Assembly: GCA_965649825.1 (NCBI GenBank)
Contig: OZ287712.1
Coordinates: 347,708 to 411,707, forward strand
DNA: 64,000 nucleotides
From: Penicillus capitatus
Lineage: Eukaryota > Plantae > Chlorophyta
Direction: 5' to 3'
The translations under genes were made by a program, and so were the position numbers. Positions 1 to 58,899 of this stretch are shown here, in pieces. Position 1 is the first letter of the stretch, and each line of letters begins with the position of its first letter. The notes under the pieces were generated by a model, which made no database searches, was not told the origin of the DNA, and saw nothing but the letters and a program-made list of their open reading frames with translations.

Positions 1-735
1 CTGCCGACGGCATCTTTCACGGGGTTGGTGGAGACCAGACCGTGCCTTTCATGATGCTTCGCCACAAGGAAATCCTTCTAAAAAGGGTTTGGGCATTGGA
101 CAGTATGCTTTTCAAACTGCCGTACGACGGAGGCGAGTTTTCGATGTACGTGTTGTTACCCGACAAGAAAGATGGATGGAAGAAAGCGGAGAAGAACCTT
201 GCATCCGAGATAGATTCTCTCTTCCGGGGTGGATTCTATTCAAGCTTCGTGGGGATGTTCAAAATCCCCAAGTGGGAATTGGAGCTGTCGCTCGAAGGAC
301 TGGAAGAAATTCTGCACAGTCTGGGATTGACTACCGCGTTCGGCGAAGATGCAAACTTCACAGGCATCATAGACTATCCTCCCCTTGCCATATCGAATGT
401 TCTTCACAAGGCCAAGATCGTTGTGGATGAAGAGGTGGGTATGAGAGTTGACTATTCTTTGCTTCTAATGGCGTGTGTCGTTGAAGGGCACAAAAGCGGC
501 AGCGTCAACAGGGTTACGCGCTGTACCGCTGACGATGCCGCCTGACTACTATGTGGATCGCCCCTTTATCTACTTTATCGTCGACGAGAAGGATGCGACG
601 ATTCTCTTCCAAGGGACACAGACCCGCTTCCCGACAACACAGACCAGTATCCCGAAAACACGTGTTGGTCGAAGGAAAAGGCACAGAAGAAGAGTCCATC
701 CGCCAACATCTCCGCCGTTTGTTCCAGTTTTCTAA
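1..735 (+). CDS. Serpin A (5' end outside window; intron 435-486)
   Basis: Serpin motifs FKLPY, MYVLLP, SNVLHKAKIVVDEE|GTKAAASTG hinge, then YVDRPFIYFI; ends FVPVF-TAA. Confidence 0.93.
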
Positions 736-5115: not shown

Positions 5116-8100
5116 ATGGGTCCGTCCACTGACCCATCGCTCTCTCCACCCATCGACACCCTTTTCCTGTATCGTAGGCGTTCCACGTTTCTTTCGCTGG
5201 GTCGCCGAGAGGTGGCCCTGTGTTTGTCAAACGATATCCATGGAATCCGCGCCTCCGACGGACAACCTCTACCTCAACCTGTCAGCCGTGCTGCAGGAGG
5301 CTGCCCTTCATTCAGGCGGACATGGAGACACGAGAGCCATTATGGAACACATTGAACACGCCGTGAACAGGATTGTCAGTCTTACCAAACCAAAATCTGT
5401 CGTCTTCCTCGCCATGGACGGTCATTCCACCACTCCTCCCTCACGCACACCACTCACGCCCCTCCCCCTTCAGGAGTGATACCGAGAGCCAAGCTGATGC
5501 GCCATCGATCGAATAAGTTTCGAATTGCTGAGAATATGAAACTGGTAACAGCCCGTGGAATGCGGCACCATCGATGCGTGCGTTGTGATGGATGTTAGGC
5601 ATCAGCCGCCGCCGCTCGGAGAGGGGAAGTATTGAAAACGTTCGATTTGAATGCCCTCACGGCCGGAACGGAATTCATGGTCGAGTTGATGCATCGATTG
5701 AAGTCATTCGTGCGGCAGAACATCAGTCAAGGTGCTCCATGGGCACCGGCTGTGATTCTTTCAGGCAGAACCGCACTCTTTTAGTCGGTTGCGATGGATG
5801 CATGGGGGTATAGGGTCGGATGTACCGGGCGAAGCCGATCACAAGATCTTGGACTACATCCGCAATCTCAAACATGCGTCAGAGTGGCGACCGAATCAAA
5901 GACATGCGTTCTATGGCCTAGACGCTTCGATCCTTCTGTCCGCGTTGGTGATCCACGAGCCACATTGTTATTTATTTAAAGAGAGAAGCTCCAAGTCTAA
6001 AGGAAGCAAGGGACCGGCTGCCAGAGTGATGTTGGAGAATCATCTGCAGGAGGAGTTCCTTCTCTGCAGCATCGGGTGCGTGGAAGAAGTGTGAGATGTG
6101 TGCGGCATGGTGTGATGGTGTTCAGTTTGCTGAGGGACTATCTCGAGATGGAGTTGGAAACGCAGCTTCCTCGCAGCTTCCGGCTAAACATCGAACGTGC
6201 CATCGATGACTTTGTCCTTTTCTGCATGATCGCTGGAAACGATTTTCTACCGGGCACGATCTCACTCTTTTCAGAACGCGCCATTGTGTGACGGATGGGC
6301 TCCCCTCTTTCTAGGATTGGAGTGTTTTGATGGGGTCGATGCTCTGATGGAAAATCTCATGGAGAGCTATAAAGTCATGTTACCTGTTCTGGGTGGGTAC
6401 ATTACGCAAATTGGCCGAATCAACGGCGAAAGACTACAAAAAGTACCATCCCCTTGTCGCCCCTCCCTCCATCCGCATACTCCTTCCTACCCTCAAGGTC
6501 CTGCATCACTGTTCGATCACCGAAGAAGGGCACGTTCGACGGCAGCTTCATGTGAGACCTACCTGCCTTAAGTACAGAAGGGCATCCGTGGTGGTCTTGT
6601 CGCCTAGGCTATGAACGAAGGGAAGCTTCAAGAGAAGGACAGAGTTGTGGATCAGGACTTCCTGTTTCTGAGCAACCGAGCGGCCAGAGATATCTTTAAC
6701 GAATCGCCCACGCCCGAAGATGCCATCGAAGCTTGGAAAGTGAGCGACGGCGGAGTGTCGTGGAAGACTGACTCGCTGGACGTGTCTGTTTAGCGTCGGC
6801 ATTATCAAGAGAAGCTTCATGTTCCACCCCATTCAAAACAGACTGTCATCACGCAGTACTTCGAAGGACTGAATTGGTCCATGAGATGCTTTTACAGAGG
6901 AATGCCGAGCTGGAACTGGTATTATCCGTATCACTATGCGCCGATGATTTCTGACATGAATGACATGGACCCGTCCAAAGGTCACATCACTCTTTATCTC
7001 ACTCTTTTGATATAGATCCTTCGCTCTGCTGTTTAGTTTTGTTCAGAATGGGCAATCCAGTGTCGACGTTATTTCATTTGATGTCCGTCTTGCCGCGTGC
7101 TTCACACAAACTTGCACCTCGAATACTGCAACCCCTGATTATGGATCCCAAATCTCCTTTGGTATCTTATTACCCAAATGACTGCCGAGTGGACATGGAA
7201 GGTCACACTTGTGTCATGCATCTCACACTTTCCTCTTGACCTCTGCCTGTGCATCGTAGGGAAAAGAATGGACTGGGATGCTGTTGTATTATTACCTTTT
7301 TTGGAAGACAGAAAACTGGAATGCATTCTGACCAAGGTCCAATCTCAGCTGACAAACAACGATCTTGATCGAACAAAAAACGGCCATTCTCTGATCTTTA
7401 CCTCTAAAGAAGGCACCCAGTCTATCGCCCTTCCTGCTTTGACTGTGGTTTCCAGGTCTGATTCGAGTGGCCCTATGTATCCACGACCCATCTGCCATGA
7501 CGAACCTCTCCGCCAATGGAGAATCAAGCAACTCGAGGAAGTCCTCGTCGAGCATCGATCTGAATAGTTTGAGTTCTCTTAAGGCTTTTAGAAGTGAACT
7601 AACACCTGATACTGTGACTGGCACTCAAGCTCCTAGTGGATACTGGACACTTAAGTCACACAAGGCGCCGCCGCCAGCCGCCGTTGCCGATCGTTAGGGT
7701 TTGGGTGTTTAGGTGATTGCATCTATGAAGGAATTGGAAGTGTGCCTGTTCAATTATCCAAGCGCAAGGCGTACCTTGCAGTTGACGCTGCCTCCCGCTG
7801 CATCTCTCTCCTGTCCCGAACTGCTGATCGGTAGAGTTGTGTTTGTGGACTGGCCCTCGCTGCAACGAGCACGGGTGGTCCGAATTGAAGACCGGCGTTG
7901 CATTACCGAAACGAAAGTGAACTATAGTGATGAACCGTCCTACAAAGCCCAAACCTGTCAAGCACATCACGTCTTCAAACAGACGCTAAATTCCCAGGAA
8001 TGGTCCAACAAAGTGCAACAGACCACCCGTCTTCTCCGAGAGAAGAAAGGAATTGAAGTGGGACTCGTAGAGGTCCTTGTCACCGTCAAGAAAATTAATG

Positions 8101-9965
8101 GCGCCCTACGACTCGGCCTGGATCATTTCGTCGAGCGATACGGCGGTCACGAAACCTATCCCCTACAGGTCGCGCCGCCAGCCTATCACATCATCGAATG
8201 ATCATCTCTTATGTACGCAGGCCGTCATGTTGGAGAATGTCTACCCGAATCATCCAGTCGATCTAGGAGACGAGCAAAAACTGACGTTATGTCCACACGA
8301 CCGTCTTCTTTATGTTGGAGAGGACTATCCAGGAACGGTCGCGACAGTGTTGGACGACGAGGATTCCCCGACAGAAACGTCATCGCTGAAAGGCACGTCC
8401 TCCCTGCGCCATACCACAAGCGCGATCGATCGATCTGTGTACAGAAGACGAGGTGGATCTCTGTTCGAGGGAGAACGAATCCCTGGCTGTCTCGCTCCAA
8501 ATGCCCGCCTCTTGTGCCACATCTGCTCTCAGATCTGTACAGAAACGGCTGAGAAACACATCTGAGCACTACTATCCGAGCGGAGCTGTCGCCACGCGTC
8601 TGGGTGTCACGCCTCAGGGACTCTCGCGCATTACTGGAAGTCTCTGGGTCAATACGGGTCAAGAACGACAAGAGATTGGACTGGCGGTTAAGCTAGGGAG
8701 CAAGAACATGTGTGTCGTGGGCTATGTGCGCCCAAGCTCCAACGGAACCGGTTGGGAATACACCGAATCGCTCATCCGCATACTCGAGAGCTATCACAGC
8801 GCCTTCTTTTGGGTCTTCGAAGCAGTGGATGCCACGCCCGAGGGAGGAGAGATCAATCTGAAACACGTTTTTCCTCACCGATCTGACACAGACCTGACAG
8901 AACTGGTCAAAAGAACACGAGAATGGCTGAACGGGCTGCCTCTCACTGGACGACCCCTCGTTACGGTAACGCAGCCCACGGCATCGACGTCGACTCGAGG
9001 CGGTGCCCTTTATGTAGGCCGATGCGTGCGTCGGGAGCATCGCCGTTATCGAAGAGGCCTGTGAGACGCTGTCCAAATCGAATGGCGGCGCAAAGCCTAT
9101 CCTGACGAGATTGCCCCGATCCCAACTCATCCCGCCGACAGACAAGTCCACTGTACGATCGAAAGAGGTACCGTCGTTGCGTCGATCGATCGGGCGATGC
9201 GTGAGCGGAGTGCGCTAGGTGGCTGGTGAGATGTTGATCGGCGATCTGGTGATCTACATCGGCACGTCTGTCATCAGTTTTGGATCGTCCGGCGTCGTTG
9301 TCGGAACGTTGAGGGATCAAGTGGAGGTGCTGTTTTCTTCGAAAGTCCTCCACGCTGTCTCGATACTAGGCAATTCAACAAAGAAACGCAGCTGCCTTGT
9401 GAATACTATGGACTTGGTCAATATCTCACGATTAAGGGGGGAAGAACGGTCGAAACACGAAATACATAACAACAAAAATACGCAGCACCACAACCACCAG
9501 TACTCTCAACGAGCCAAACGTGAGCCGCCATAGAGTGACGGACGGTCGACGGGGTGTCTGTGTTTGTGGTGCAGATGGCAGTATGGGTGGTCGTCTACAG
9601 AGTCCATATCCGCAGCAGAACAGCGCGAGAAGGCGTGGTCATTTGAGCTGGAACGATCGAGGAAGCCGAGTACTGCACGGTGTCCTTCCGCAGCATCATC
9701 ACCAGCAGCAGCATCACCAGCAGCAGCATCACCATCATCCAGGGCAACCTGTTCCCGAATCCGTCTGTGCGATGCGTCCAGTGATGGCAGTTCCTGCTTA
9801 CGGCTCAGGCGTGTACATTCCTGGGATGACACCAATGCCAGGTCCATAGATCTCACTCTTATGTCTCCTCCTCACACATATAGGATGGCTGTCTTAGGTG
9901 TCCAAGGCAGTGTCCCTTCGCATCCAATGCCATTCATAAATTATTCATTGACACCTCGCTATTAA
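5116..9965 (+). CDS. XRN1: Full-length XRN1-family 5'-3' exoribonuclease homologue with altered active site (18 introns)
   Basis: MGVPRFFRW start, DGVIPRAK, GTEFM, VPGEADHK, YGLD, AGNDFLP, YFEGLNW..PSWNWYYPYHYAP, GKRMDWDAVVLLPF, C-terminal SH3-like region (GDLVIYIG...VEVLFS) and Q/H/P-rich tail. Confidence 0.92.
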
Positions 9966-10339
9966 ATCTGTGGTCATGATAAATCGACAGATATTGTTAT
10001 AGTTAGCCGCATTCATCCGTTTTGGAATTTGATTGTGTCCTTCTGCCTTGCTACTGTGATTACTGCCAGCTTTCGTGGGTTGTCAACTGCATCGACGCAC
10101 GCGCTGCATTGCTCAAAGACATGATGGGACATGTGTCTTTTCGGTTTCCTCGGCGACATACTCTGTAAGTGCTAGTGCTAGAAAGACAAGAACGCTTTTG
10201 GAATTGTAAATAACGCGAGGCGGTTCACATCCAGCACAGAGAAAGTGACGGAGATGCGAAGGATTCTCTTACAGATTTTGTCGCGTTCAGAGAAACGACC
10301 AGCCGATGCAAAGAGAGATCAAGAGAGATCGAGGAGCGT

Positions 10340-13300
10340 CTACCCGTGAAGAGCAGCTCGACGAGTGGCGGCGCGCGTCTGCCGCATGGTATGTGTGCTC
10401 GTTGTGGATGTCGCCGTCTGAAAGGACTCGGGAATAGATTCGGCATCGCTCACATCTCCCATCTGAAAGACTTGCAGATCGCCATCGGTGTGCACTAACT
10501 GATCATGCATCCCTGCCAAGAAGACCTCCTCTGATGCCGAAGGCGATGCGGGAACAGGCGCGTCGACCTGAGGCGTAGCGATGGGAGGCGGGAAAGGGAC
10601 GTCGATCGTCGAATGTGCTGACAGGCGTGCCGGGACGCGTTCCTGATCGATAGGAAGCGACTTCTCCCTGAGGAAGAGAACAGACGGTTCAGATCAGGGG
10701 CGAAAGTGTCCGTAGGGTTACGGGAGAGAGGAGGACTTCGCTCGTGTCGTCTGCATCGTGCCCCGCTTGACGGCGCATCCCAGAACGCAGCGATGTGATC
10801 GGACTGCCGAACGCAGTTGGCGTCTCGGGAGGGTCATCGTTGCGGTCGATGTCGCGTCTCCCATCTCTTTGCATTCTGAATAAGGCGCCCGTGACGACAA
10901 GGGCAATTCCCACGAGTAGCCATATCACACGTGAGAGATCCAGCGCTGCCTGTGTCTCCGTCGACGCGTCTTCGATCACGAGCGGCGCATCGAACGAGAA
11001 CGCCGGGCATTTCGCATAACCCAGCGCCTTTTCTGCCAGCGAAGCGCACAGAATCCTCACGTCATCTGATCTGCGGTCCTCGTTGGCGGCCGCCGCCGCC
11101 GCCGCCGGGCACATGAACATCGGCGTGTAGACTGGACATGTGTCGTCCCTCGGCACGAACCGCACGTCCACTCCGCCGATCTCTTCGACGCCACTCGGTG
11201 CGTGCCACAACGGACAGAACTGAAGAAACGACCAGAGAAAAACGCTGGCGACTAACAGCCACGAGATGAGCTTCTGTCCGTGCCCCTCTCGTCCATTCGC
11301 ATTCCATTCCCACGAGAACCGCAAACCTTTTGCCTTGCCCTCCTCATCCTTCCCTAAGAACAGCCACCTCTCCAGCGGCAGTCGACGTCTGGCACACGTC
11401 GGATACCTTCCGTGATAAAAACTTCGGAGTCGTGGCCTGTGGACGTCATCTTTCGAGGCGGAACTGGAATCCGAGAAGATCCGTTTTTCCGGCTGCTCTT
11501 GTTCGTCGTTGGTTCGCCGCCCGAAGGTAATTCGCTTTCCGCGTGTCCGTGCCGCGGCGTATTCGTCAAATCCGTCAGTTGTATGTCGCGTGGGCGATTT
11601 GGACGTGGCGGCGTTCGTTTTGACGCGGAACTGCGGGATGGCTGATCGGCGGCATCGCGTGTGCGTTCAGGTCTGGGCAGCTTAGTGCCGGGCGATTCGG
11701 ACGTCGTCGAGACCGACGTCTTTTCATCGACGATCAAGATTTTGATACTCTCCGGCACCGAACCACGCTGCCTCTCGTTCTTCTTCGACGGCGACGGACA
11801 CGGCGGAATGCTTGACGTCGCAGAAGCGCCTCTTTCACTTTCGACGACGATCGACATCCCCTCGTCGTCGACCACCTTCGCGCTATCATCTCCGGTCGTC
11901 TCGTCAATGACGGCGGTCTTGATCGAGTGATCTGTCTTTGTCGCCGCCGGCAACGCAGACGGCTTCTTATTGGCGTTCTGCGCGAGAGGAGCCTCCGGAG
12001 TCGTATTGCGAATGATGCCGATGTCGGCAGAGGTCTCGCTGACCATGCCACGACGCACGGATTCGGTCAGCGCCGAAGTAGGCCGTTTGACGTCGTGCTT
12101 CTCAGAAAAACGCTTCGCTGGCGGCGACGTCTTCGTCTCCGTGCGTTCAACCGCTTGGCACAGCTGACTGAGTCGCTCCGACAACGGCAAGACGTTGCTC
12201 CGTGACAAACGTCCGCTGTCGCCGCCCTCATGCGTCGCTTTCTCACGCGTTTTGCTTTTTCGCGTGGTCTTCGTCGCCTGTTGGCCATCCGTCTTCTTTC
12301 CTTTTGCCTTTGCCCGTTTTCTTCGATAGCGCTGAACTCGAGGCGGCTCCGCATCACGTGTCCCCGTCACACGGAAGAGGCCCTCGGCGCGTTCGTCGTA
12401 CGAAAAGGTTCCGTCTCGGTCGCTTTGCGTCACCGTGTTCGACAACGAAGCGTCCTCCCACACTTCGACGTTGCTCAAGCCGTTCACCGCTCCGAACGCA
12501 AACAGGTCGATATCGTCTGTCGAGACGCTCTCGATATCCGTCGCTTCGGCACGGAGAAGTGGCGTTGTCACTCGGGCGATCTCTGTCGTCTTGGCACCGG
12601 ATCTCTTCCGAAGAAATCCACTTCCTTCATCCTCTCGGCTCAGTTCCTCTTTTCTATCGCACAGACAAACGACGTCGAGAGATGCCTGGCTAAGCGTGTG
12701 CCTTTCCCCTGACGTTTCTTTGAGGAATTTATCGAGTTTTCGGCATCGTCTGGAGTGGGGATTGATGGTGTAGCCCGAGGCGTTGGATATGGTGTCGTCG
12801 TACGAAGGGTAGTGGACGGAGTCAACGAGCGACGAATGCGGTCGCGGAAGTGTCCGTCCATCACGTCCGTCGACGTTTTCCGCCTCGTCTTGTGACGCAC
12901 CGCTCCCCTATCAGACCATCTGAAGGCGATTCGCAAAACGTCCGTCGCGCTCACGTAGAAGGTCAGCCGCGATGCCGATTCGCGCGACTGGCGGTCTGCC
13001 TGTACGTCGGCAGTGACCTCAGACGGTGCCTCCGAATCCGCAAAGACATCGACGTGCACGCGAGGACTCGCCGTATGCGAAGCGACTTTCGAACTCGCCC
13101 CTGCGACGCACAACGTCCGTCTCTGCATCCGAGGAGACAAAAGTGTAATAGAGTGACGTCACCTGTGGACTGCGACTGCAAGTACTCGGTAAATGTTTGT
13201 AACGTACCGCGAGTCGACAGCTCAAGTGAACCTAGACGCACTCCACACCACATCCGACGCGATCCTTCCACGCCTACCGGAGTCGTTTAGGCTCGACGGT

Positions 13301-14191: not shown

Positions 14192-17100
14192 TCACTTTCT
14201 TAAGAGACAGACGCCAATGGCGAGCATCGTGACGAAGAGACCTGTGACAAGACCCAGTGCAAAAATCAAATACTCAATCACGGCAAAATGCCGAGCGTCT
14301 TGGGCTGTCCCATCCGAGCGCAGGTCTACAGCAAAGGCAGCCAGCCGTAGGTGCTCGCTTTGGTGTGGAAAGAGCGACGTGCCTTTCAGTAGGTAGTACT
14401 TCATGAGCGTGCCCAGGGCCTTGTCGACGGGCGCTTCGTCGTCGAAGGCGCCATAATCAAACGCGTGTTCAAAATGGTGTTCTTCAGGAACGGCAAGCGT
14501 CTTGCCCGACCACCACTGAGGACGATCGATGTTCTGCGCCTCCGACAAACCGGGTACGAAAGGAGACAAGGTCGACATCGCGTAGTCCTCTGCAGTTCTC
14601 GGACGCTCCTCCTCCAGCACCGCCTCGTCGCGAGCATCTTCGCTGGCAACATCTCCTGACGCTACGCACAAACCCGACGTGCGTTCTTTGTCCGTATCCG
14701 TAGAGATATACCCTGAAAAGTCTGCATAGGAGAGGGGTAGGCCTGTAGCAATGCTCTTTGTTTCCTTTGGCGGTCTGCTTTGCCATCTCGCCGTTTCGCC
14801 CGTCGGATTCCGTACGTCGTTTCCTGCAGCGCCGACAACGCCTTTACCGTTCGACCGACCTGAAATCACATCGTTGGAGGACAGACCGACATACGATGCC
14901 GTCTTTGACGGAGATGGACCTCGGAGAGGATCTCGTCTGAACCCGTTGGTAAGTGATCGAGCTTGAGAAGCTCATTGGGAAGACCGTGGTCCATCGTGGA
15001 ATGAAAATGCGCGTCGTGTGCGACGATGGCGGTGGATGCTTTCAAGATACGTCGCATCTCCTCTTCTCCGTCCTCCACGATGCGTGACCATCCATTGCCC
15101 AGGTGCTCACGCAACGATGCATCGAGCTTAGCGATGGTCGCCTTCATATCCTCTCCGTTGTCTCCGTTCGCCGCGTGCTCTTCTGTACCGCCGAGCGTCT
15201 GTCGAACCAGATCCACTGCCGCTTTTGTCGACGGATTTTCGATATCGATCGTGTCGAACTGTTCTCGGAATCGCAGCCAATCGCCGTTTCCATCGGTTTC
15301 CAAAGAATCGATCAAGGAACGGAGCTGCTCTCGAACAGGCTGCGGAAGATCCTCAATAGACGTTGCACGGGTCCGGGCGCGTTTTCGAGTCATCGTGGCT
15401 TTCCATTCGCCGAGGCGCTTCGTTGACGCCGACGCTTTCTCTCTGAAGATGCGCTGAATATCCGGCACGTCAGCAGGCGACATAGCACCCGCGTCTGCCA
15501 GAAGCTTTCGTTTGCGTTCGGAAAGAACATCTTGAATCCACTCCTCCAATCGATTCTGCACTTTGGTCACTGTCTGGCTCTTATCCACTCCCATGACCCT
15601 TCTGCCTATGGCCTGAAGCAGCTCTTCACGAAACGCCGCCACTGGCGTTGGCGCTTCGTCTGCATACTCCTCCTTTTCTTTAAAGCCCGACGAGAAATGC
15701 AAAGCGTCTGCGGAAAGGTGCTCGGCGCTTGCGTCGCTCGACTCTGTTCGCCGAGAGAGAAGCGTCTCGAGTGTATCCACGACTGCGTCTAGATCCACGT
15801 GGTATTCTGCCAGCACGTCTGGATGTGCGTCAGCGTCGGCTTCAGACAAGAGTCGTCGCTTCACCGAGGGCTGTTCATCGTCGTCTCGTTTTTGCACTCG
15901 AGAGAACTGGCCGATGTTGCGAACGAAGGCCTTGAGCTTCGAAACGGTATCTTTCAATTTCTCAATCGGTCGTTCCTTTGCCTCCGCAGCTGACTGAACG
16001 TCGATGTCATCAATGAGTTCTCTGAGTGTCGTCGGCGGAGCGTCGACAGGCAAGTGGCGTGCGACGATTGGATTGGTACCCGGTATGTAGCTCTCGATGC
16101 TGAGTATCTGCTTCAGTAACTGAACCAGACGAGCGTCACTTTTCGACAGCGCCGCCGTCTCCAGCTGTGCGTATCTCTGCTCTATGGCGACGACGCTTCT
16201 CCACCACTGTGCCAGACAAGGAATGCGCTTGAGATCCCGAAACTCCACGCATTCACGGAATCGCGTTATGGCGTCACTCATGTCCTGACGAAAAGAAGAG
16301 AGCAGAGGGATCTCGGCAGCTCTGCTCTGTGTCACATAAGCGCGAGCCTCAAAATCGGCAACGGTCGACTCCAACTCGCGGACCAACTACATCGAAAATG
16401 AACGTCTGAAATAAAAAGAGGCATTGGCAAAAAGAGACGTGCCTCGGCGAGACATACGAGGGAGGTATTGCTGGCATCCTGACGGCACGATTCATAACGG
16501 CGAAAAAGAGTGAACACCACCTGGAATGGCGCGCTCAAAACGTTTGAAAAGAGTGACAAACTCTACCTGGGCGAGATCGACGCGTTGTCGGAGATCTTGA
16601 ACGTCTTCTATACTTGCTTGTAGACGCTCCCAGGCGTCTGTCTCCAGCGTCGTGCTCTTTTCTAGATTCCAAAAGAGTGAGATGACCTTAACCGTAGAGC
16701 CGTAGAGCCGTAGCGCTCGACAGTACTTTGTTGTTCAAGAGTCAGGTCTTCCAAGATGCGTTGCATCAGATCGTGTAAGTGTGGCATCGAAGACGCATCG
16801 CCGAGTCCTTGATCGAAGACCTCCTGCAACGTACGCGTCTGATCGACTTGCTCGACGGCGTCTTCCTGAACGAGAGACTCGAGCAATGTCGTCCACGCTG
16901 CGCTTGGACGTTGCCATCGTGAGGGTGTAAGGCATGGCATACTTGCTATCCAGTCGCTGGGATCTGCGTCCGTCATTTGCTGCAAAGGACGCTGTTGCGT
17001 TTCTTCTTCCACGACGCGCAGCGCAGCGTATGCCGCAAGCGCTTCGCTATGTTGCGCAAGGAATGCCCTTCGTATATAAACTGTCAGATTTAGCTCGACA

Positions 17101-23350: not shown

Positions 23351-24785
23351 ATAAGTTTAATAGTATTGTTATATAACAGTGATTCGTTTTTTGAAAGATT
23401 TCAGTCTGCTATCGACCGTCCGTGAGGTTAACAGTAATGTTTCATTCATCTTGCCGATATGTCCTTACAGCTGTCAAATACAAAACCAAGGGAACACGTC
23501 ACGAAAGAACTCGGTGATTACATTGTCACTGTCAGGAAGGGAGAAGAACTTAAGAAGAAGGTCATAACATGACATGAGGCATGTCGCCATCATAACGTCA
23601 TGCAGAAAACCACTATAAAAAGGGGGTTATCCGAACAAAGATCTGTAACAAGTGAACGTCTATCTGTTTTAACAAAGTTTGGTATTTGCTCATATCAACA
23701 TGGAAGTGGTTGTGGTCGAGCTCGATGCATGAAAAATGAGAGACAAAGAATGTCGTGACATGCATGGAATGGTCATCTCAGGGACGGATATCAGCTTTTA
23801 ATGCCATTACGAATGCAAGTGGCATCATGATCGCGTGGTTTACAGACTCGGGAGCGAAGAGACTGACGTGCATAAATCTAAAAACAACTCAATGGCTTAA
23901 ACAACACTCTTCATAGCTTCTGAATGGAATGTTTCTCGTTACAAGAAACGAATGAGATGTCTTGGCACTGTTTAGAACTGATTGTTCATAGAACACTTGT
24001 ACAAACTTGCTCGTGCGATTCGTGCCGGATGTGTGAGCCTATTGTCACGGCGTTTTTAATTGACATACCCTTAGTCATCATTCGACAGGAAACGCTTTAT
24101 CTTTGTGTGCATTTACGACGACTGTTCTCAAGCTGTTCTTTATTTTCTGACCGAAATGCGGTCGACGGAAAACATGACTGTGACAAGTATCCGCCGAGGC
24201 CGATGGAAGAAACCGCAACGCAGCAAGCTCCCTCCTAACGCCAGAAATCAAAGATAGTCGCGGCGAAGCGATTGCAAAATAAAACAAACAGAACTAGGCA
24301 GCTCGCGTCACACTACGGTTCGCCCGCAAAGCGTTTGCGTCTCATCTCGCGGCCGAGGTTACGCAGAAATCATTAAGATCCATAAGCTGCATGAAGTAGC
24401 GACCACTTCACGGCTACGCCCAAAAGAACGAATGGCTACAGCTAGCAAAACAGAAAACATTCAGCTAGAGACGTTCGTTGTCTTTACAGCCGAGCAACAG
24501 CTCACATTTAACAAGCAAATGAGAGTTATACCAGAAATGCACATAAAATGTATGCCGTATTCGAACGCGCCTAAAGAGCGAATTCAACAGTGACCTGAGT
24601 GTCGTCTCATACCAAACAAAGATGACTAGACATGTGCTTCATTCAACTGGCCATTCAACAGCCAACGATACCAAACAGGTTTGCCAGACGTTCATTCCTC
24701 AATCTGCTGTTTCCCGAGAGTTCGACCGCCGAATAGAGGATCACTCATCCATGCGATCTGTCTTACTGGGAGACAGCGGCAAAAT

Positions 24786-26077
24786 CTAGAAAACTGGAAC
24801 AAACGGCGGAGATGTTGGCGGATGGACTCTTCTTCTGTGCCCTTTTCTTTGACCAGCACGTGTTTTCGGGATACTGGTCTGTGTTGTCGGGAAGCGGGTC
24901 TGTGTCCCCTGGAAGAGAATCATCGCATCCTTCTCGTCGACGATAAAGTAGATAAAGGGGCGATCCACGTAATACTCGCGCAGCATCATTCTCGCTGCGA
25001 TGCGTAACCCTGTTGACGCTGCCGCTTCTGTGCCCTTCATTACACGCCATTAGAAGGAAACAATAGTCTACTCTCATGCCCACCTCTTCATCCACAACGA
25101 TCTTGGCTTTGTGAAGAACATTCGATATGGCAAGGGGAGGATAGTTTGTGATGCCTTGGAAGTTTGCATCTTCGCCGAACGCGGTAGTCAATCCCAGACT
25201 GTGCAGAATTTCTTCCAGTCCTTCGAGCGACAGCTCCAATTCCCACTTGGGGAGTTTAAATACCCCCGCCTCGATCGAAGCGAATCCACCCTGGAAGAGA
25301 GAATCTATCTCGGATGCAAGGTTCTTCTCCGCTTTCTTCCATCCATCTTTCTTGTCGGGTAACAACACGTACATCGAGAAATTTCCCCCTTTGTACGGCA
25401 ATTTGAAAAGAATACTATCCAATGACGGCACTCTTTTTAGAAGGATGTACTTGTGGCGAAGCATCATGAAAGGCACGGTCTGGTCTCCACCAACTCCGTG
25501 AAAGATGCCGTCGGCAGTGTCCTGCGGGGAGAATTGTGTCTGCCACTTGTCCTTGAAGTAGAGGGCGTTGACAGCCACCAAGGCCGTGTTAGCATCAAGT
25601 ACGCCAGGCGGAATGATCTCTGGTATCATCCCCTCCGTTTTTTCTGCCACCCATGCATTGATGTCGCGTCCAACGGCATCGTATCCGTGAACGAAATCGA
25701 CGTGCTCGAGGTTGTCACGACCGACGTCCCGGACAAAGCGGTTCTTGATTTTCAACTCCTCTTCCACGTACACGCGATTTGCCATCTTGGCGGCGGAGTG
25801 TCTGCTGTAGTCGTCCATCTTGTCTGAAAGGCGACGCTTCTCGCGCTTGTCCTAAACGCATAATCATGAAGACGTCGTTGCTGTATAACGGAAAGCGTAC
25901 GTCAAATCCGAAGAGGTCCTCGATTTCTAACTTGGTCTTCCCGGCAGCGCCATGATAGACGAGCAGAAAGCACATGGCGATGGAGAGTGGGGAGAAGATG
26001 AGGCTTTCGCTGAGGTGGTTCGCTCTCCATTCCGAAACCACCTGCTGAGAGAATTCGTTGACGGCGTTTTCAGCCAT
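24786..26077 (-). CDS. Serpin B (complete, 2 introns, no signal peptide)
   Basis: IFSPLSIAMCFLLVYHGAAGKT, ANRVYV, INAWVAEKTEGMI, VNALYFKDKW, hinge EEGTEAAASTG, VDRPFIYFI. Confidence 0.95.
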
Positions 26078-45660: not shown

Positions 45661-47908
45661 ATGGAGACGACGTTGACGGACACAGCGGAGCCACCCGATA
45701 TTACCACCGAGGTAACATCCGAGCAGCGCGTTTACGTCTCTCATCCATCTACGGTCGATTCAGAGACCTGCTCAGGTTCCGCATTTCGACGCCTATCAAT
45801 ATTCCTTCTTTACCTCCTCCAACCCCAATGCCCTTGGAGAACTTGAATACGAGACAGGCCTCGAGGTGCGTTACGTCTGTTATCTTGGCTGTCGTCAGGG
45901 GCGTTGGTTGGTACGTGCGTAGGAGGGCGTCGTAGCCCCACCCGAGGAGACTTTCTTTGACTGCGCCGATAGTGACGTGACACCATCTTTGACATTTGAG
46001 ACGTTCGATGAAATCGAACAGAAGGCGACCAAGTCTATGATGGGACCCAGTTCCTCCATCCGTTCACCCAAGGACGCCCAGCGACCCGTGCTGCTGGTCG
46101 AGGAACTGGAGAAACAGTTTCAAGCGGCATCTCTGAAACCCGCTCCTCCATTGACTGTCTCGGAACTGGAGGCACAGATGTACGGTGCAGCGGCGGCTGC
46201 GGCGGCGGATGAAACGGAATCGCATTCCGTTGGATGGCAGCCTCCGCGTTTTGCGCAGCATCCTGGCGATGGGCTGCTATTGAGGGCATCGCTGATGGGA
46301 CAGCAGCCATCGACTATTCCTTGGCTGCGTCCTTCGCCACAATCTGCCTCGCTCCTCAGCTCCTTGACGCAAGTTTCGTCGCAGCTCGGCAGCAGTGGAA
46401 GCAGTGTACAGGGATCCTCACTGTTCATGAGTGATTTTCAGTCGACCGGTTTTGCATCGATCTCACCGAGTCTGCTGCGTTCGCAAGAGAGTCATCTAAC
46501 AGGCTATGGCGGCGGCGGCGGCGGCGGGAGTCTGGGACTGAATGCAGATCTCTCAATGTTTACTGGCGGAAGTCACACTCAGAAATACAAGTTCATGACA
46601 GCAAGCGAAATCGAGAAGATTCTGGCTTGCCAAGTGCAGAACACACATGTACAGAATCCTTACTCGGACGACTATTACTACCATGCCTTCATGAAAAAGT
46701 ATCGCCGCGGATCTGTGCGATTCTCTCCATTGTCTATTAAGGAACTGGAGCATCAGGAGCAAAACATGAAGGCAGAAGTGAAATTTGCGGATCTGCAGGG
46801 ATTGGGCAAGATTCCGTTCTCCAATCTGAGAACGCCGCGTCCTCTCATCGATTTCCTGGACAACGAATCGCTCGCCAGTGCCGAAGAGGAAGCCGGCTTA
46901 CAGAGCATCCAATGGGAGTACATCCGTTTGGCCCAACGAGCTCAGGCCATGCACGCACGAAAGCTGATCGAAGACGCCATGTGTCTGTTGCTAGAAGTGG
47001 ACGACGTCGATCGTCTGGCCATGTCCGAATGCGGCAAGATAGATCTACGCAAGCTGGCTGCCAGAAGACGCGATCTCATCGGCAGCATCGTCGCCGCCTT
47101 TCGGATTCCGTCCACTCCGGAGGGCGTGGCTTCGGGTGGACGCTTTAACGGCGATGGCGTTTTTCTTCGTTTGATGTCTATTGCCAAGGGACGATCACTG
47201 TTGGCCAAGCTTCTGAACGTCTTGGTGCCGCCGCGTCCCTTTCAGGCACTGCCGACCGATACCAAACCGCTCTCGCACATTTGCTGGACGACATTGCGCA
47301 ACATCCGAGCACTGTTCGGTCCGACAACGTGGATCACGAAAGCGGGAATCGATGTCGATCTGCCGACGCTTTCGGCAGAGACCAGCAAAATCGCTGTCGG
47401 TTTGAAAGAAGTGATCTTGACGCTTAAATCTGCCACCGATGTGTGCAAAGCGTTCGAGGCCTTAGCAAAGGGCGATCTGATGTCATCGGACGGTTCCGTC
47501 GTGACACCCGAAGAGCTCCTTCTGCCGTTTCTTCCACCAAATCACGTCCCTGGATGCAAGACGGGCATTTGGCTGGAGGCCGTTCTGGTGGCTTTACTGC
47601 AGCGTGCTCTGGAAGTCGGCTTGGCACAGCGCATCAGCTTTACCCATACGATCGGCGCCTATACCGATTTTGAACTGATGAAGAAGTGGGAATGGGTGTT
47701 CGGGGTTCTGTACGGAGCGGTAACAGCGCATCTGAAGATCTTGGTGCAGGTGCATCGTGTAGCTAAGGAGCGCAATCAGCCCCAGGCGCTGGAGTATGCT
47801 AAGGGACTCCTGGGCAAAGATCTGTTGAGTGCCACACTTATGCTCTGCGACCAACTGCAGTTCTCTAGTGTGAAACAGATTGTGAATGCTTTGTTGGAGT
47901 GGTCGTAG
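45661..47908 (+). CDS. PAT1: mRNA decapping activator PAT1
   Basis: N-terminal FDAYQYSFF, KFMTASEIEKIL, PYSDDYYYHA, LGKIPFSNLRTPRPLI, IEDAMCLLLEVDDVDR, KGRSLL. Confidence 0.92.
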
Positions 47909-48025: not shown

Positions 48026-49925
48026 ATGGCGCCACCTGCGAAACAGAAGACCGGCGATACTTACAAGTCTGGCGTTGCTGGACGCAGCGACGTGAGGGTG
48101 TGTATGTTCGTGTGTTTGGGTTTGTAGAGACGAGTCGAAGCGACGCGACGTTCGTTCGGCGAATATCGAATCGGCCAAAGCGCTTGCGGATGCGGTGCGA
48201 ACGAGTCTCGGGCCGCGAGGGATGGACAAGATGGTGTGTTCGTGCGGCGGCGGCGGCTGATTAGAAGTGTGAGAAAGTGTGATGTAGGTCTCGAGTCCAG
48301 AAGGCGTGCTGATCACAAACGACGGCGCGACGATTCTCAACAAAATGAGCGTCACACAACCGGCGGCGAAGATGCTCGTCGAGTTATCCAAATCACAGGT
48401 CGCACGATGCCGAACGCAGCGACGGTGGGAAGGCTGCCGTATAGGATGTGGTGGCGGGAGACGGGACGACGTCTGTGGTGATCATCTGTGGCGCCTTGCT
48501 GCGCAAATGCTCGGATCTCTTGGACAGAGGCATCCACCCCAGCGTCATCTCCGATGCCTTTCAGAAAGCGGCAATCCGGGCGTGCGAAGTCCTGACCCAG
48601 ACAGCCATTCCCGTGGATCTGGGTGACAAGACAGCGCTCATTCAAGCGGCCAATACGTTACGCGCCTGCTCGACGTCTCACTCTTTAAAAGAGTGAGATC
48701 GATTGTAGATCGCTCAATAGCAAAGTGGTGGCGCAACATGCGTCGCTGCTATCGCCCATGGCAGTGGACTGCATTCACAAGCTCCGTTCGGACAAAAGCC
48801 AGACAGGGTACACACATCTCACACATAACATCGGCTATCTCACTCTTTGCGATGTGTGACAGGCTGGATCTAAAGAATGTGAAAGTGGTGTCGAAGCTCG
48901 GCGGTATGTTGGAAGATGCAGAGCTGGTGGACGGTATGCTCTTCGATCAGAAATCTGCAAAGGGCGCCAGTGGACCCACACGTGTGACCAATGCCAAAAT
49001 CGCTCTGATCCAGTTCTGCATCTCGCCTCCGAAGACAGACCTCGAAAACAACGTCATCGTGAGCGACTACCAACAGATGGATCGCATTCTGAAAGAGGAA
49101 CGCAATTACATCCTCCAAATCGTCAAGAAGATTCGTGCGGCCGGCGTCAACGTCCTCCTCATCCAAAAATCGATTCTGAGAGATGCCGTCACCGATCTCT
49201 CCCTGCACTACCTCGTCGGCAGTGACTCGAACGAAAAGAGCGCGATCGGTGTTCTCTAGGCGAAAGCGAAGATCATGGTGGTGAAGGATATCGAGAGGAC
49301 GGATGTGGAATTCGTGAGCAAGACGTTGGGATGTCTGCCGATTGCCCACGCAGATCACGTGCGTCCGGAGAAGCTCGGATCGGCGGATCTGGTCGAAGAG
49401 GTGTCGATCGGACGCAATCGCGTCGTTCGCGTGACCGGTATCAAGAATCCTGGCCCGACAGCGACCGTCCTGCTGCGCGGTTCCAACAAGTTGATCATCG
49501 AAGAGGCCGAGCGATCGCTGCACGACGCCTTGTGTGTTGTGCGCTGTTTGGTGCAAAAGAGTTTTCTGGTGGCTGGCGGCGCCGCCCCCGAGATGGAAGT
49601 GACACATCAGCTCACGCAATGGGCGAAGACGCTGCCAGGGATGGAACAGATTTGCGTGCGGAGCTTTGCGGAGGCGCTGGAAGTGATTCCGTATACCCTG
49701 GCAGAGAACATCGGACTGAATCCCATCGAGAAACTCTCGGAGCTGCGCAATCGGCATGCCAAGGGAGAAGTCCATGCCGGCATCAATGTCAAGAAGGGTA
49801 TCATTTCGAATATGATCGATGAGAATGTCGTCCAGCCTCTCCTCGTCAACACCAGTGCGATCACGCTGGCCTGCGAGACGGTGCGCATGATTCTCAAGAT
49901 CGATGATGTCGTGTTAACGCGTTGA
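48026..49925 (+). CDS. CCT4: Chaperonin CCT subunit delta
   Basis: [72 protein letters not shown]. Confidence 0.97.
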
Positions 49926-55448: not shown

Positions 55449-57040
55449 TCACTTTGTGGAGTCTTTCCGTTTCTTCACGGAGCTGTCTTTGGACGAGGCC
55501 TTGGCCACGGCACTGGCCTTCGATTTGGCTGTGGATTTTGTTCCGTCTGACGTTGCTTTGACCTTGCCGGTCGCCTTTGCCGTCGCCTTGCCAGACTTGG
55601 ACGTCACCTTAACCTTCTTCGTCACCTTCTCCACGGTAGGGGCCGCGGCAATGCGCTCTGTCGGCAGCGACGCCAATTTGCATTTCGTATCTGGCAAATC
55701 GAACGACGTCTTGCGTTCTCGCTTCTCATCGAAAACGCCGAGCTTGTATTCATGATCGCACAGATCGCAGATGCCATTCTCGAAACTCGACAACTAAAAT
55801 ACGCAAGATAGAAATGCAAGCAAATCTAAAAAGGCGGCGGGCGTCCTTACGGCAAGATTCTTTTCCAGGCAGTTGGGGCAAGGATTCCAGATGGCACGCC
55901 AATCGCGATCGAAGGCAGAAGCGAGGTAGTAAGGACGCTCGTCTGCACCCTTGACGAATTCCTTGACGTACTTCGTCGCCGCAGAGGATGACGCGATCGC
56001 CTGATAGCCATCCATATACACATCACTCTTCTCGACGGTTTCCTTTATGGACGCACCTGATATCCGTTTTTCTTTTCGGGAACATTGGGACAGCAGCGAC
56101 GTCCGTTTGTCGGCCAGCCGGTCTCGCAGACCCAGACGTCTTTGGTGTAGAATTTTGACAGTCCAGTGGCACGCGCGTTGGCATAGGAGGCCGCAGCGAT
56201 GCAGTTGTCCTTGGCGCGCAGCGGGCATTCCACAGGTCTCCCCTCTGCATACGGCATGATCTTGAGGCAGATAAAATCGACAGCCCTGGAGCAAGCGAGG
56301 GGTATCAGCGCAAGTCTTTGCGCGGGAGGGTCGATCTACTCGGCGAGCGTGGCTCCGTGCTCCGATTCCCAGACACCCCATCCTTCCGCCGTCGTCACCG
56401 GATGGGTCAGTTTGTGTTTGCGCAGAATCTTCTTGACGCGGTCGATGTAGCCGACCAACAGATCGACGTTGTCCTGGAAGAAGAGACAAGAGAGTTGGCG
56501 GCGTGTGTGTGGCGGCTGGAATAGAGGACCAGGATTTTGGCATAGCGGTCGGTGCTGCCAATTCTGCCGTTGACGAAGGCATCGCTGCCGACGACGATAG
56601 CCTGGACGGCACCGGAATGCTTCTTCATGACCGATTCCATCATCTTCATCTCCTTCTCGTTGTCTTCTGCCGACGTTCCGAGAAAAACGCCGAGCAGAAT
56701 GGTGACATTGAGCTTCTCTGCCTGTTCCATCATCGCCCACGTGGTCTCTGGACACACGGCAATGTTGTAGAGCCGGATGCTCTTGACAAACGTCGCCATG
56801 ATTTGGGTATCGATGATCGCCTAAAGTACAGATGGCGTTCAGAGGCTTCGGTTGGCGGCTGTGGCGGCGGACTTGTTCTTTCGAGACGCAGATGTCTTCG
56901 GTGGAGAAAGCAAAGGGGTCGTAGGTGATTCCATACAGCGGTTTACAGCCGGTTGCTTTGGCAGGTGCAGCTCCCAGTGCACCGTACGTGCAGCAACCGA
57001 TGACCAGAAGCAGCACAGCCAGACGGTCGAAGAATTGCAT
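55449..57040 (-). CDS. GH17-family secreted protein A, lacking catalytic NE motif, with K/A/T/S-rich tail
   Basis: Signal peptide, YGITYDP, SIRLYN, VVGSDA (vs VGNEP), HPVTTAE, VDFICL, CETGWP. Confidence 0.85.
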
Positions 57041-57733
57041 ATTGTTTTGCGAGCGACGCCAGCAGCTCAAGCGCAAATGCGTTAAGGGACGAGCGGGTCG
57101 ACGTATCGCCACAGAAACTCGTTCTTGTGTGTTTGCCGGTTCTTTGGTGTAGGTGATATACAGGCGAAGAGCGAGTCTTCAAGAGATGTACGCGTTTGGC
57201 GGTGTCAAGAAAGGACGCCGAATTTCGATGCGTTGTTCAGCAGACCCGTCCGTCCACAAATGCACGGTTGTACGGTACGCAGCGGTCAGCCATCGGTTCC
57301 TCTGCTCCAGCGGTTTTTGACTGGACGCCTGCGACGGTTGACCAAAACGCCTTGCCTATAGGATACCGTTCGACGCTGCCGATGGCGCCCTCTCGCATGA
57401 CGCATCTTGGCCGCATCCACGGTGCAAAAGCGAAACGTGTGTGACGTTTCTGCGCGTTTCGACGACCCGTCCACGACCGTCTTTGCTGAAAGAGTTCCTC
57501 GACGGCGATTTCGGCGTGAAGTTTCGTCCACTCAGCGACTAACCGTTTCATGGCGATTGCCGACGGTATGAAAACACGAAGCGCGTGCAGGTGTTAACGA
57601 TTCCTTGAAGACGATCGTGAACTGCGTCTGCCTTTCATTTCTTCCCACCCTCTGTCTTCGGTCAGACCCCAACCCAGAGGCGCGTATCTACCATCCACCA
57701 CCGACTCCGAAAGCGACCGCTACCGTGCCTCGA

Positions 57734-58899
57734 ATGTCGGTCGTGAAATTCGTCCTCCTCACTGCGCTCATTGCGGTCATCTCTGCGACGCCGTCGTGTG
57801 AACCCAAGCCGTTCTATGGCGTCACCTACGCTCCCTTCTCTATGGACTATGCCAACATCTGTCTTCCGACCGAACGGGTAGGGACATCCGCGTGGCACTG
57901 ATTGTCTCACCTGAGCGTGCGTGCGTTCGTGCGTGCTGCATAGGTCAAGAAAGATATGAAACTGATTACGAAGGTTGCACACAGTATCCGCCTCTACAAC
58001 ATCGGCATCTGCTACGACGATACCATCGTCGTAATGGAAACGGCGAAGCGTCATGGCATGACGGTGACCATCGGACTCTGGATGGATGGCAACGATACGA
58101 CGATCTTTGACAACGAGTTTGCCGTGCTCCCCGAAATGATGGAGAAATATGGAGACATCATCGAATACGTCGTCGTCGGCAATGAACCCCTGAAGGTCGA
58201 AGAGATGAAAGTGGAAGACGTGATCGTGCGTTATCGACGTGTTAAGAAGTGGATGATCGCCAACGGCTACTCCCATCCCGTGACGGTTGCCGAAGTCTGG
58301 CAGGCATGGGAATCGCCAGACGGATTCGAGCTCGTCAAAGAGGTCGATTTCCTATGTATGAACATGCAGCCCTACTGGGAAGGGTTCTATGCCGAATGCC
58401 CCGACAACGAACCAGACTGCACGACGGCAGGTCGGCTAATCTCCTCTCTCCTGCAGAAATCGCAACGCTGTCGTTCGTAGCGGACTATATCCATCTGAAG
58501 GCGGCGGGTTTGGAGGAGTTCTTTCAGAAGAAGATCGTGCTTTGTGAGTCTGGCTGGCCGACACAAGGCGAAGCCTGTTGCAGTGGTATCGATGATCCCG
58601 TGATCCCTGGCTTCCATGCCGTTCCTTCCGTCGACAACGCAGTCCACTTCGTCCACAACTTCGTCTACCGTGCGAAGGAGCGAAATGTAAAGTACTACTT
58701 GCATGCGGGTATTGACGACGACTGGAAGAAGACCTGGGATCCCTGCGACGAATGCAAGGGCACGGGCGTTTCGAAGTTTGGTGGGGAGGAATGCGATTTC
58801 TGTGTTGTGGATTATTACTGGGGCATGTACACATACGATCGCACGTACAAACCGCACTACGTGTTGCCAGAAGCGGCGGCGCAATGCGATGTTCATTGA
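57734..58899 (+). CDS. GH17-family secreted beta-1,3-glucanase/glucanosyltransferase B
   Basis: Signal peptide, YGVTYAP, SIRLYN, VVGNEP, HPVTVAE, VDFLCMNMQPYW, CESGWP. Confidence 0.9.

Follow-up and report, generated by a model that had tools for sequence, protein, structure and literature searches.

Gene model and domain architecture

The subject of this study is an XRN1-like gene on the forward strand of a 64,000-nucleotide stretch of DNA from Penicillus capitatus (contig OZ287712.1), the whole of which is referred to below as the window. It is the only XRN gene within the window and encodes a full-length member of the XRN1 family in which several metal-ligand and 5'-phosphate-pocket residues have been replaced, so that the protein is a candidate pseudo-exoribonuclease. 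The host lineage is probably that of the siphonous ulvophyte green algae including Caulerpa (Bryopsidales), Caulerpa being the closest named relative as far as this protein is concerned.

The gene was assembled from 20 exons, which are separated by 19 introns measuring 43-61 nt each (Table 1). The resulting coding sequence of 3837 nt, which opens with the ATG at 5116 and closes with the TAA at 9963-9965, specifies 1278 amino acids (aa) with no frameshift and no internal stop; the locus is a many-intron eukaryotic gene, without any long bacterial-style open reading frame (ORF) across its whole span. The exon junctions are backed by a near-ungapped alignment with an orthologous mRNA (L001, see below), the least certain ones, at 8393-8444 and 9520-9574, being situated in variable regions. 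Of the 19 introns, 14 have GT-AG and five have GC-AG boundaries. Among the latter, four are forced by the reading frame or by in-frame stops, each matching the orthologue mRNA without gaps, and the validated junctions read, with a slash at the splice point, VILSG/SDVPGE, NDFLPG/LECFDG, IFTSKEG/LIRV and LKSHK/VIASMK. A GT-AG intron at 7467-7521 was considered and dropped in favour of the GC-AG intron at 7413-7455, since the latter alone reproduces the GLIRV… segment of the orthologues. The excess of GC-AG introns is local, four introns of a neighbouring CCT4-like gene being all GT-AG. Many introns of the window contain, a short distance upstream of the acceptor, the element CTCAC(T)CTT, which probably serves the host as branch-point and polypyrimidine signal. 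Beyond the stop codon there are two copies of TGTAA, which we take to be the chlorophyte poly(A) signal.

All five domains of XRN1—XRN_N, XRN_M, D1, D2/D3 and SH3-like—are recognised by Pfam, which places the protein within the XRN1 family; the last three, which are XRN1-specific and absent from XRN2/Rat1, score above their cutoffs. The core of D2/D3 is presumably the domain known as 'winged-helix'. The claim of the sequence-only reading, i.e. the first inspection of this DNA, that a spliced ORF remains intact over ~4.8 kb together with the C-terminal XRN1 domains, is thus borne out by an unbroken model with the full domain set. Among solved structures, the top match is the Drosophila XRN1 (2y35, E = 1e-107), the alignment with which displays the same active-site substitutions as described below, followed by human and yeast XRN1 and the K. 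lactis enzyme (3pie, 1e-98). Searched separately against the PDB sequences, the C-terminal half yielded weak matches at most and exon 16 none. The N-terminal segment MGVPRFFRW and the motif GNDFLP are unaltered, and SWxWYYPYHYAP is present. In a neighbour-joining tree, the protein and its closest relatives fall among the chlorophyte XRN1 but are set off by a long stem, their mean distance to non-green outgroups being 1.24 versus 0.83 for canonical chlorophytes. The gene descends from an ordinary chlorophyte XRN1. An Rfam scan of the window gave no match.

Table 1 Coordinates of the XRN1-like gene and its parts in the window, and state of the functional positions in canonical XRN1 and in the clade
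Feature	Position	Strand	Details
XRN1-like gene, start to stop codon	5116..9965	+	20 exons, 1278 aa
Exons 1-10	5116-5119, 5178-5420, 5474-5544, 5599-5764, 5814-6075, 6126-6253, 6315-6442, 6498-6551, 6608-6739, 6794-6980	+	
Exons 11-20	7037-7201, 7260-7412, 7456-7664, 7713-8168, 8221-8392, 8445-8965, 9018-9167, 9219-9519, 9575-9841, 9898-9965	+	
Five GC-AG introns	5765-5813, 6254-6314, 7413-7455, 7665-7712, 8393-8444	+	donors AG/GCA.. or AAG/GCG..
XRN_N (aa 1-218, spliced)	5116..5983	+	Pfam PF03159, E = 1.5e-51; alignable with residues 1-206 of 2y35
XRN_M helical domain (aa 219-564, spliced)	5984..7411	+	Pfam PF17846, E = 5e-70; best-scoring stretch 393-564
XRN1 D1 (aa 613-789, spliced)	7599..8229	+	Pfam PF18332, E = 3e-15; aligns to yeast Xrn1 6q8y residues 718-901
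XRN1 D2/D3 (aa 851-1008)	8465..8938	+	Pfam PF18334, E = 7.5e-25
SH3-like (aa 1073-1135)	9234..9422	+	Pfam PF18129 (SH3_12), 28.2 bits vs cutoff 26.2, E = 1.9e-6
D35 to N35 (metal ligand), AAC	5276..5278	+	N in 4/4 clade members; D in 76/76 canonical where present
HSGGHGD (aa 46-52), adjoining the active site	5309..5329	+	invariant in 4/4 clade members
5'-phosphate pocket segment PRAKLMRHRSNKF (aa 86-98)	5482..5520	+	K93 retained
Q97 to H			canonical Q 98/99; H in 4/4 clade members
R100 to N			canonical R 99/99; clade N/N/K/K (K in the Caulerpa branch)
R101 to K			canonical R 99/99; K in 4/4 clade members
E-A-D-H of GEADHK (E176 kept, G177A, E178D, H179)	5831..5842	+	codon coordinates and alignment
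G177 to A			canonical G 100/100
E178 to D			canonical E 100/100; D in 4/4 clade members
H179 kept			canonical H 100/100; clade H/H/Q/Q
D-A-S of YGLDAS (D206 kept, D208S)	5921..5929	+	codon coordinates and alignment
D208 to S, TCG	5927..5929	+	canonical D 100/100; clade S/S/H/Q
D86, K93, E176, D206, D291			all kept in the window protein
D291-equivalent D288	6241-6243	+	inside XRN_M; D291 kept in 4/4 clade members
W540-equivalent W519	7274-7276	+	inside XRN_M; Trp in window and L001, R in Caulerpa
Clade-hyperconserved loop aa 91-130 (…HRSNKFRIAENMKLASAAAARRGEVLKTFDLN…), spliced	5497..5670	+	invariant 21-23/30 vs 0-10/30 in canonical chlorophytes
D2/D3 core (aa 894-1008), most conserved part in the clade	8594-8938	+	identity 78% in the clade vs 39% in canonical chlorophyte XRN1
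C-terminal tail motif YGSGVYIPGMTPMPG…HPMPFINYSLTPRY, spliced	9793..9962	+	common to window, L001, L006 and Caulerpa
Two TGTAA motifs, candidate poly(A) signals	10164..10209	+	199 and 240 nt past the stop codon

Active site and 5'-phosphate pocket

XRN1 hydrolyses RNA by means of metal ions bound on seven acidic residues; the structures from K. lactis and Drosophila reveal, in addition, a 5'-monophosphate pocket formed by K93, Q97, R100 and R101, and translocation by the His41/Trp540 stack. These positions, given in yeast numbering, were compared with those of 100 canonical XRN1 from all eukaryotic supergroups, and for a survey of the acidic heptad (D35/D86/E176/E178/D206/D208/D291), 355 XRN_N-containing proteins were aligned to the canonical profile. 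The heptad is DDEEDDD in all 219 complete canonical sequences (219/219) and N-D-E-D-D-S-D in the window protein, while the pocket, canonically K-Q-R-R, reads K-H-N-K. Among the 355 proteins, more than one deviation at the seven acidic positions was seen solely in the clade formed by the window protein and its relatives, which has three; the other exceptions, where all seven positions are visible, are five singletons with one deviation each, probably reflecting gene-model errors.

The motifs in translation are DNLYLNLSAVLQ, PRAKLMRHRSNKF, GEADHK and YGLDAS. The sequence-only reading had already recognised D35N, the altered pocket segment and the two latter motifs, all of which reappear in both the translation and the alignment to 2y35, and its codon coordinates for positions 35, 176-179 and 208 were found to be exact on recheck. 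It had further claimed a replacement of His41 and a loss of about eight functional residues, and these claims stand in part. In the ungapped HMMER alignment to 2y35, His41 is indeed a Q, but MAFFT inserts five residues (QEAAL) and pairs the HSGGHGD of the clade with the canonical H41-N-C-T-H45-G-N (HNCTHGN), His41 being displaced by the insertion; the His of the His41/Trp540 stack is therefore alignment-dependent. The robust changes amount to six rather than about eight, namely D35N, Q97H, R100N, R101K, E178D and D208S.

The product of xrn1-D208A, the standard catalytic-dead allele, binds decapped mRNA and remains trapped on it (PMC6428865), and 13 residues have been reported as essential for the activity of Xrn1p (PMC3854532). 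With D208 essential according to the former study, the window protein has the constitution of a pseudoenzyme, i.e. a clear XRN1 homologue minus residues essential for catalysis. The combination of D35N, a non-acidic residue 208 and E178D would make hydrolysis very unlikely. As far as its sequence goes, the protein fails the definition of XRN1 as an enzyme and retains its family membership by homology and architecture.

Members of the clade

The pattern of N35, D178, non-acidic 208, H97 and K101 recurs in three further relatives, 57-67% identical to the window protein: the protein EP00210_P009231 from Caulerpa lentillifera (P0002; 57% identical; NFFLNLNPVLQ, AKLNQHRSKKF, GEADQK and YGLDAH), present in databases as an unnamed gene model; the JGI contig Ga0099821_1560817 (P0001/L001; 67% identical; NMFFNLNSVLY, AKMMRHRSNKF, GEGDHK and YGLDAS); and a Caulerpa-like genomic contig from the Logan run ERR4592244 (P0121/L003; NLFLNLNPVLH, GEADQK and YGLDAQ). 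Exon 16 (8447-8965), used as query in an exhaustive HMMER search, retrieved, besides the ORF of the window gene itself (P0242), C-terminal fragments of about six more members (P0241, P0243, P0244, P0252, P0263 and P0269), and a hand-made degenerate DNA pattern for ATPEGGEIN retrieved L006 (Ga0099817_1567369), which is intron-free and extends from aa 506 to the end and into the 3' untranslated region (UTR), the catalytic end not being covered. A profile search of metagenome contigs with the clade alignment gave no match.

In the four members with N-terminal sequence, N35, D178, H97 and K101 are fixed, whereas positions 208 (S/S/H/Q), 179 (H/H/Q/Q) and 100 (N/N/K/K), the ungapped position 41 (Q/Y/Q/H) and the stacking Trp (W/W/R) vary, a pattern to be expected where selection still acts on the fold but no longer on the catalytic chemistry. 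The same positions bear on the possibility that the metal site has been remodelled, with D86, E176, D178, D206, D291 and possibly HSGGHGD binding one or two metal ions, and that the protein is still an exoribonuclease or other phosphodiesterase of different metal or substrate preference. The four acidic ligands, D178 as the product of E178D, and K93 are invariant though ~40% of the residues differ within the clade, MGVPRFFRW and GNDFLP are intact, the clade-invariant His/Asp motif adjoins the active site, and some apparent pseudoenzymes have been described as having migrated catalytic residues (PMC10211241). Position 208, however, is S, H or Q depending on the member, so that the clade does not conserve any one replacement chemistry; none of the canonical XRN examined departs from D35 or D208, and the single substitution D208A suffices to abolish activity (PMC6428865); and the stacking Trp is lost in Caulerpa, with R100 and R101 replaced. 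A remodelled enzyme is accordingly considered improbable.

Expression and selection

L001 carries an uninterrupted ORF of 1261 aa with flanks of 70 nt at the 5' and 239 nt at the 3' side, a TGTAA standing 28 nt before the 3' end. Since L001 and L006 are intron-free and possess UTRs, while the window gene has 19 introns and the genomic contig L003 has at least four intron positions in common with it (after ATGG, GNDFLP, …QL(H/E) and VD(M/I)EG), the two are to be regarded as spliced mRNAs; the orthologues are thus, most simply, expressed as spliced transcripts. It should be added that the intron density of the XRN1-like gene differs greatly within the clade, L003 (1-2392) lacking at least seven introns of the window gene (residues 21-291 are contiguous) and having the four positions in common, and that the L003 donors examined (after ATGG, …QLE and VDIEG) are GT, unlike the GC-AG introns of the window gene.

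Between L001 and L006, the rates of synonymous (dS = 0.81, unsaturated) and nonsynonymous substitution (dN = 0.116) give a dN/dS (omega) of 0.14, ranging by region from 0.03 to 0.15, with 0.10 in D2/D3 and 0.36 in the tail. Between the window gene and L001, the proportions of nonsynonymous and synonymous differences are 0.21 (pN) and 0.79 (pS), the latter being saturated and allowing only a bound, with omega below about 0.1, and ~0.07 in XRN_N. The gene has therefore been retained under purifying selection, far from a dN/dS near 1, and orthologues are represented by two intron-free transcript contigs.

These data bear directly on the suspicion that the locus could be an ordinary pseudogene, or an artefact of assembly and annotation arising from permissive intron calls. 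In favour of such a suspicion, 5 of the 19 introns require GC donors, the locus belongs to a metagenome assembly (ENA ERZ25074695, contig ctg340425_37x_l of 702 kb, identified through P0242) and the protein is without an annotated model in databases. Yet the 3837 nt are free of stops and frameshifts, four GC-AG junctions match the orthologue mRNA ungapped, orthologues are intact in at least four other sources at an omega of 0.14, and the neighbouring genes are normal, so that an ordinary pseudogene is effectively refuted, and hardly any weight is left to an artefact. The sequence-only reading had also held that the gene does not look like simple pseudogene decay; the intact ORF and the substitutions common to three relatives speak for this view as well, and its wider proposal of a nuclease-dead XRN1 kept under selection draws support from the same substitutions, the low omega and the non-acidic residue 208.

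Shift of constraint

Of 137 alignment columns at least 95% conserved in canonical XRN1, the clade keeps 86 in all its members, changes 26 in all and 25 in some. Read from this alignment, the whole catalytic core appears to have relaxed and then settled again. Identity in XRN_N is 68% within the clade and 75% among canonical chlorophyte XRN1, whereas for the D2/D3 core (…YYPSGAVATRLGVTPQGLSRITGSLWVNTG…VFEAVDATPEGGEINL…) the order is inverted, this core being the most conserved part of the clade proteins (Table 1). A loop at aa 91-130, which comes after the phosphate pocket and reads …FRIAENMKLASAAAARRGEVLKTFDLN…, is likewise hyperconserved. At the C-terminus, the full-length members share the end YGSGV(Y/F)I(P/A)G…P.PG…HP.P(F/Y).NYS(L/M)(T/S)P(R/H)Y, while the tails of canonical chlorophyte XRN1 end otherwise, e.g. 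…FWxxL…. The inverted conservation and the tail motif have the hallmarks of acquired or sharpened binding functions. The tail of the window protein contains, moreover, a His/Gln low-complexity tract (HHHQQQHHQQQHHHH; 9685-9747, forward strand), which is absent from L001, L006 and Caulerpa.

The distribution of constraint could also mean that the protein is a non-catalytic scaffold, e.g. ribosome-associated or in granules, that no longer engages RNA ends, its C-terminal domains and tail being what matters and its N-terminal domain serving for folding. This would agree with conservation being strongest in the tail motif and in the core of D2/D3 instead of around the pocket, and with the change of Q97, R100 and R101 alike. 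On the other hand, XRN_N is still 68% identical in the clade at an omega of ~0.07, the pocket has kept its polar and basic character (K93, H97 and K101), and the loop aa 91-130 beside it is hyperconserved; a scaffold devoid of RNA-end binding is for these reasons regarded as unlikely, if somewhat less so than a remodelled enzyme.

Search for an intact XRN1

A Trebouxia XRN1 was used as query, with a word-index prefilter, and the best 120 matches were inspected, the outcome being limited by the completeness of annotation. These matches cover Trebouxiophyceae, Chlorophyceae, Chlorodendrophyceae, Pedinophyceae, Chloropicon, Picocystis, Cymbomonas and Mamiellales-like metagenome-assembled genomes, fungal sequences starting only near the bottom; the unnamed EukProt matches correspond to Cymbomonas and Chlorella A99. 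Neither Caulerpa nor any other ulvophyte is represented by a canonical XRN1 among the 120, and the only Caulerpa sequence among the best 120 matches of the initial protein search is its putatively dead copy. Three long-contig ENA fragments (P0147, P0186 and P0198), considered as intact paralogues, are canonical, but were rejected as apparently coming from other organisms, being Mamiellales-like or apparently GC-rich (read-through ORFs rich in Ala, Pro and Arg).

There is hence moderate evidence that Caulerpa is without a canonical XRN1-type gene, and the XRN1-like gene may be the only XRN1-type gene of the lineage. The sequence-only reading had named, as a finding that would refute it, this gene being the only cytoplasmic XRN1 with normal decay; the first half of that scenario may hold for Caulerpa, and we consider the case to be made more interesting by it, not refuted. 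It is conceivable, although on balance doubtful, that siphonous ulvophytes at large, whose giant single cells are multinucleate, have no catalytically competent XRN1. Their sole orthologue would have been converted, before the Caulerpa/Ostreobium-like split, to a scaffold or a 5'-end binder that does not degrade RNA and offers a new interaction surface on D2/D3. If so, bulk cytoplasmic 5'-3' mRNA decay would be absent or rerouted, e.g. through an XRN2/4-type enzyme as in land plants, and decapped RNAs would be bound instead of destroyed, with a possible tie to mRNA longevity or transport over a centimetre-scale cytoplasm.

Other genes in the window

PAT1 is a decapping activator and a partner of XRN1 in yeast. 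A single-exon ORF of 643 aa at 45977-47908 (forward strand) weakly resembles PAT1 (Pfam PF09770, E = 2.6e-4, 19.9 bits against a cutoff of 25); its location 36 kb from the XRN1-like gene is probably coincidental. Two closely similar serpin genes, ~24 kb apart on opposite strands, at 42-545 (forward) and 24763-25818 (reverse; Pfam Serpin, 4.8e-53), look like a recent duplication, one of them being truncated by the start of the window. Just downstream of the XRN1-like gene there are two uninterrupted reverse-strand ORFs of 405 aa (11354-12571) and 506 aa (14866-16386) without a Pfam match, possibly lineage-specific genes. The CCT4-like gene mentioned above, i.e. a chaperonin TCP-1 delta-like gene whose GT-AG introns are short, occupies 48300-49925 (forward). 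Finally, a cluster of paralogous ORFs at 56336-57112 (reverse), 57956-58899 (forward) and 60150-60899 (forward), with common motifs such as NEP…VGNEP…MNMQPYWEGF, looks like putative members of glycoside-hydrolase family 17 (glucan endo-1,3-beta-glucosidase).

Interpretation

Based on the above results, the protein is, in our opinion, probably a conserved pseudo-exoribonuclease, dead as an enzyme but functional, which acts by binding—either as a non-degrading RNA-end binder or as a scaffold. According to this proposal, the fold and all five domains would have been kept and RNA hydrolysis lost, two of the seven metal-ligand carboxylates being gone (D35N and D208S) and a third shortened (E178D), and the residues of base stacking and translocation would no longer be fixed. 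Docking on RNA 5' ends, or on the machinery of decay or translation, would persist. The polar and basic character of the pocket, together with the retained D86, E176, D206, D291 and K93, suggests a persisting ability to hold an RNA 5' end, perhaps with one metal ion; what is left of the pocket, still partly basic (K93, H97 and K101), and these four acidic residues might provide it. The main function may then be exerted via the hyperconserved D2/D3 surface and the clade-specific linear motif at the C-terminus, both serving for partner docking, so that the protein would correspond, in nature, to the RNA trap known from xrn1-D208A.

Several points weigh against this proposal. Counting E178D, five of the seven carboxylates survive, and D86, E176, D206, D291 and K93 are clade-invariant, which might point to a residual or altered catalytic centre, for which the invariant HSGGHGD could supply substitute ligands. 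The changes are spread over the conserved core, their enrichment at known functional residues being marginal (Fisher p = 0.05); the 'systematically rewritten active site' of the sequence-only reading is therefore a slight overstatement, correct as to the catalytic and pocket residues but silent about the rest of the core, and its 'coordinated' loss is similarly somewhat overstated, the whole conserved core having diverged. Loss of activity, RNA binding and partner binding are, furthermore, all inferred.

XRN1 is among the most conserved RNA-decay enzymes of eukaryotes, and its non-catalytic roles—in transcription-decay buffering, in the translation of specific mRNAs and in ribosome association—are actively debated. 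A whole protein kept for a very long time with its catalysis apparently disabled would represent a natural separation-of-function experiment, with the D2/D3 core, the loop aa 91-130 and the C-terminal motif as candidate carriers of the non-catalytic function. If these algae have no other XRN1-type gene, one may also ask by what route their giant coenocytic cells get rid of decapped mRNA.

Comparison with known systems

In full-text literature searches, which also covered the trypanosome XRNB-D, no description was found of a natural catalytically dead XRN1 or of an XRN1 in Bryopsidales, and the Bryopsis genome preprint does not mention XRN. With the canonical XRN1, such as the yeast Xrn1/Kem1, the Drosophila Pacman and the chlorophyte enzymes, the clade shares the domain order, the motifs MGVP.FFRW, GNDFLP and SWxWYYPYHYAP, and 86 of the 137 near-invariant columns; it differs in the heptad, the pocket, the long stem, the most conserved part being D2/D3 and not the catalytic domain, and the C-terminal motif. 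The engineered xrn1-D208A and E178Q and Rat1-D235A likewise have a non-acidic 208 or an altered E178, D208A being the closest functional analogue; these laboratory alleles are, however, single substitutions in a wild-type enzyme, whereas the clade protein is natural, old and fixed, and combines its substitutions with changes of the pocket and with new conserved surfaces.

The closest evolutionary analogue is Ssd1, a fungal pseudonuclease derived from Dis3L2/RNase II, in which a processive exoribonuclease has turned into a non-catalytic RNA-binding regulator under selection. There is no sequence relationship between the two, whose folds are unrelated (RNB versus PIN/FEN-like); the polarity of the Ssd1 family is opposite (3'-5') and the lineage is another. 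The clade protein would add a member of the XRN family to the few pseudonucleases that derive from exoribonucleases, the term 'pseudonuclease' being used, possibly for Ssd1, in PMC8552689 and PMC8783092. The clade may, finally, be set beside another part of Viridiplantae without a competent XRN1-type enzyme, the difference being that there the gene was deleted, while here it is retained, expressed, constrained and seemingly disarmed: these are the land plants, in which XRN1 has been lost and the XRN2-type XRN4 works in the cytoplasm.

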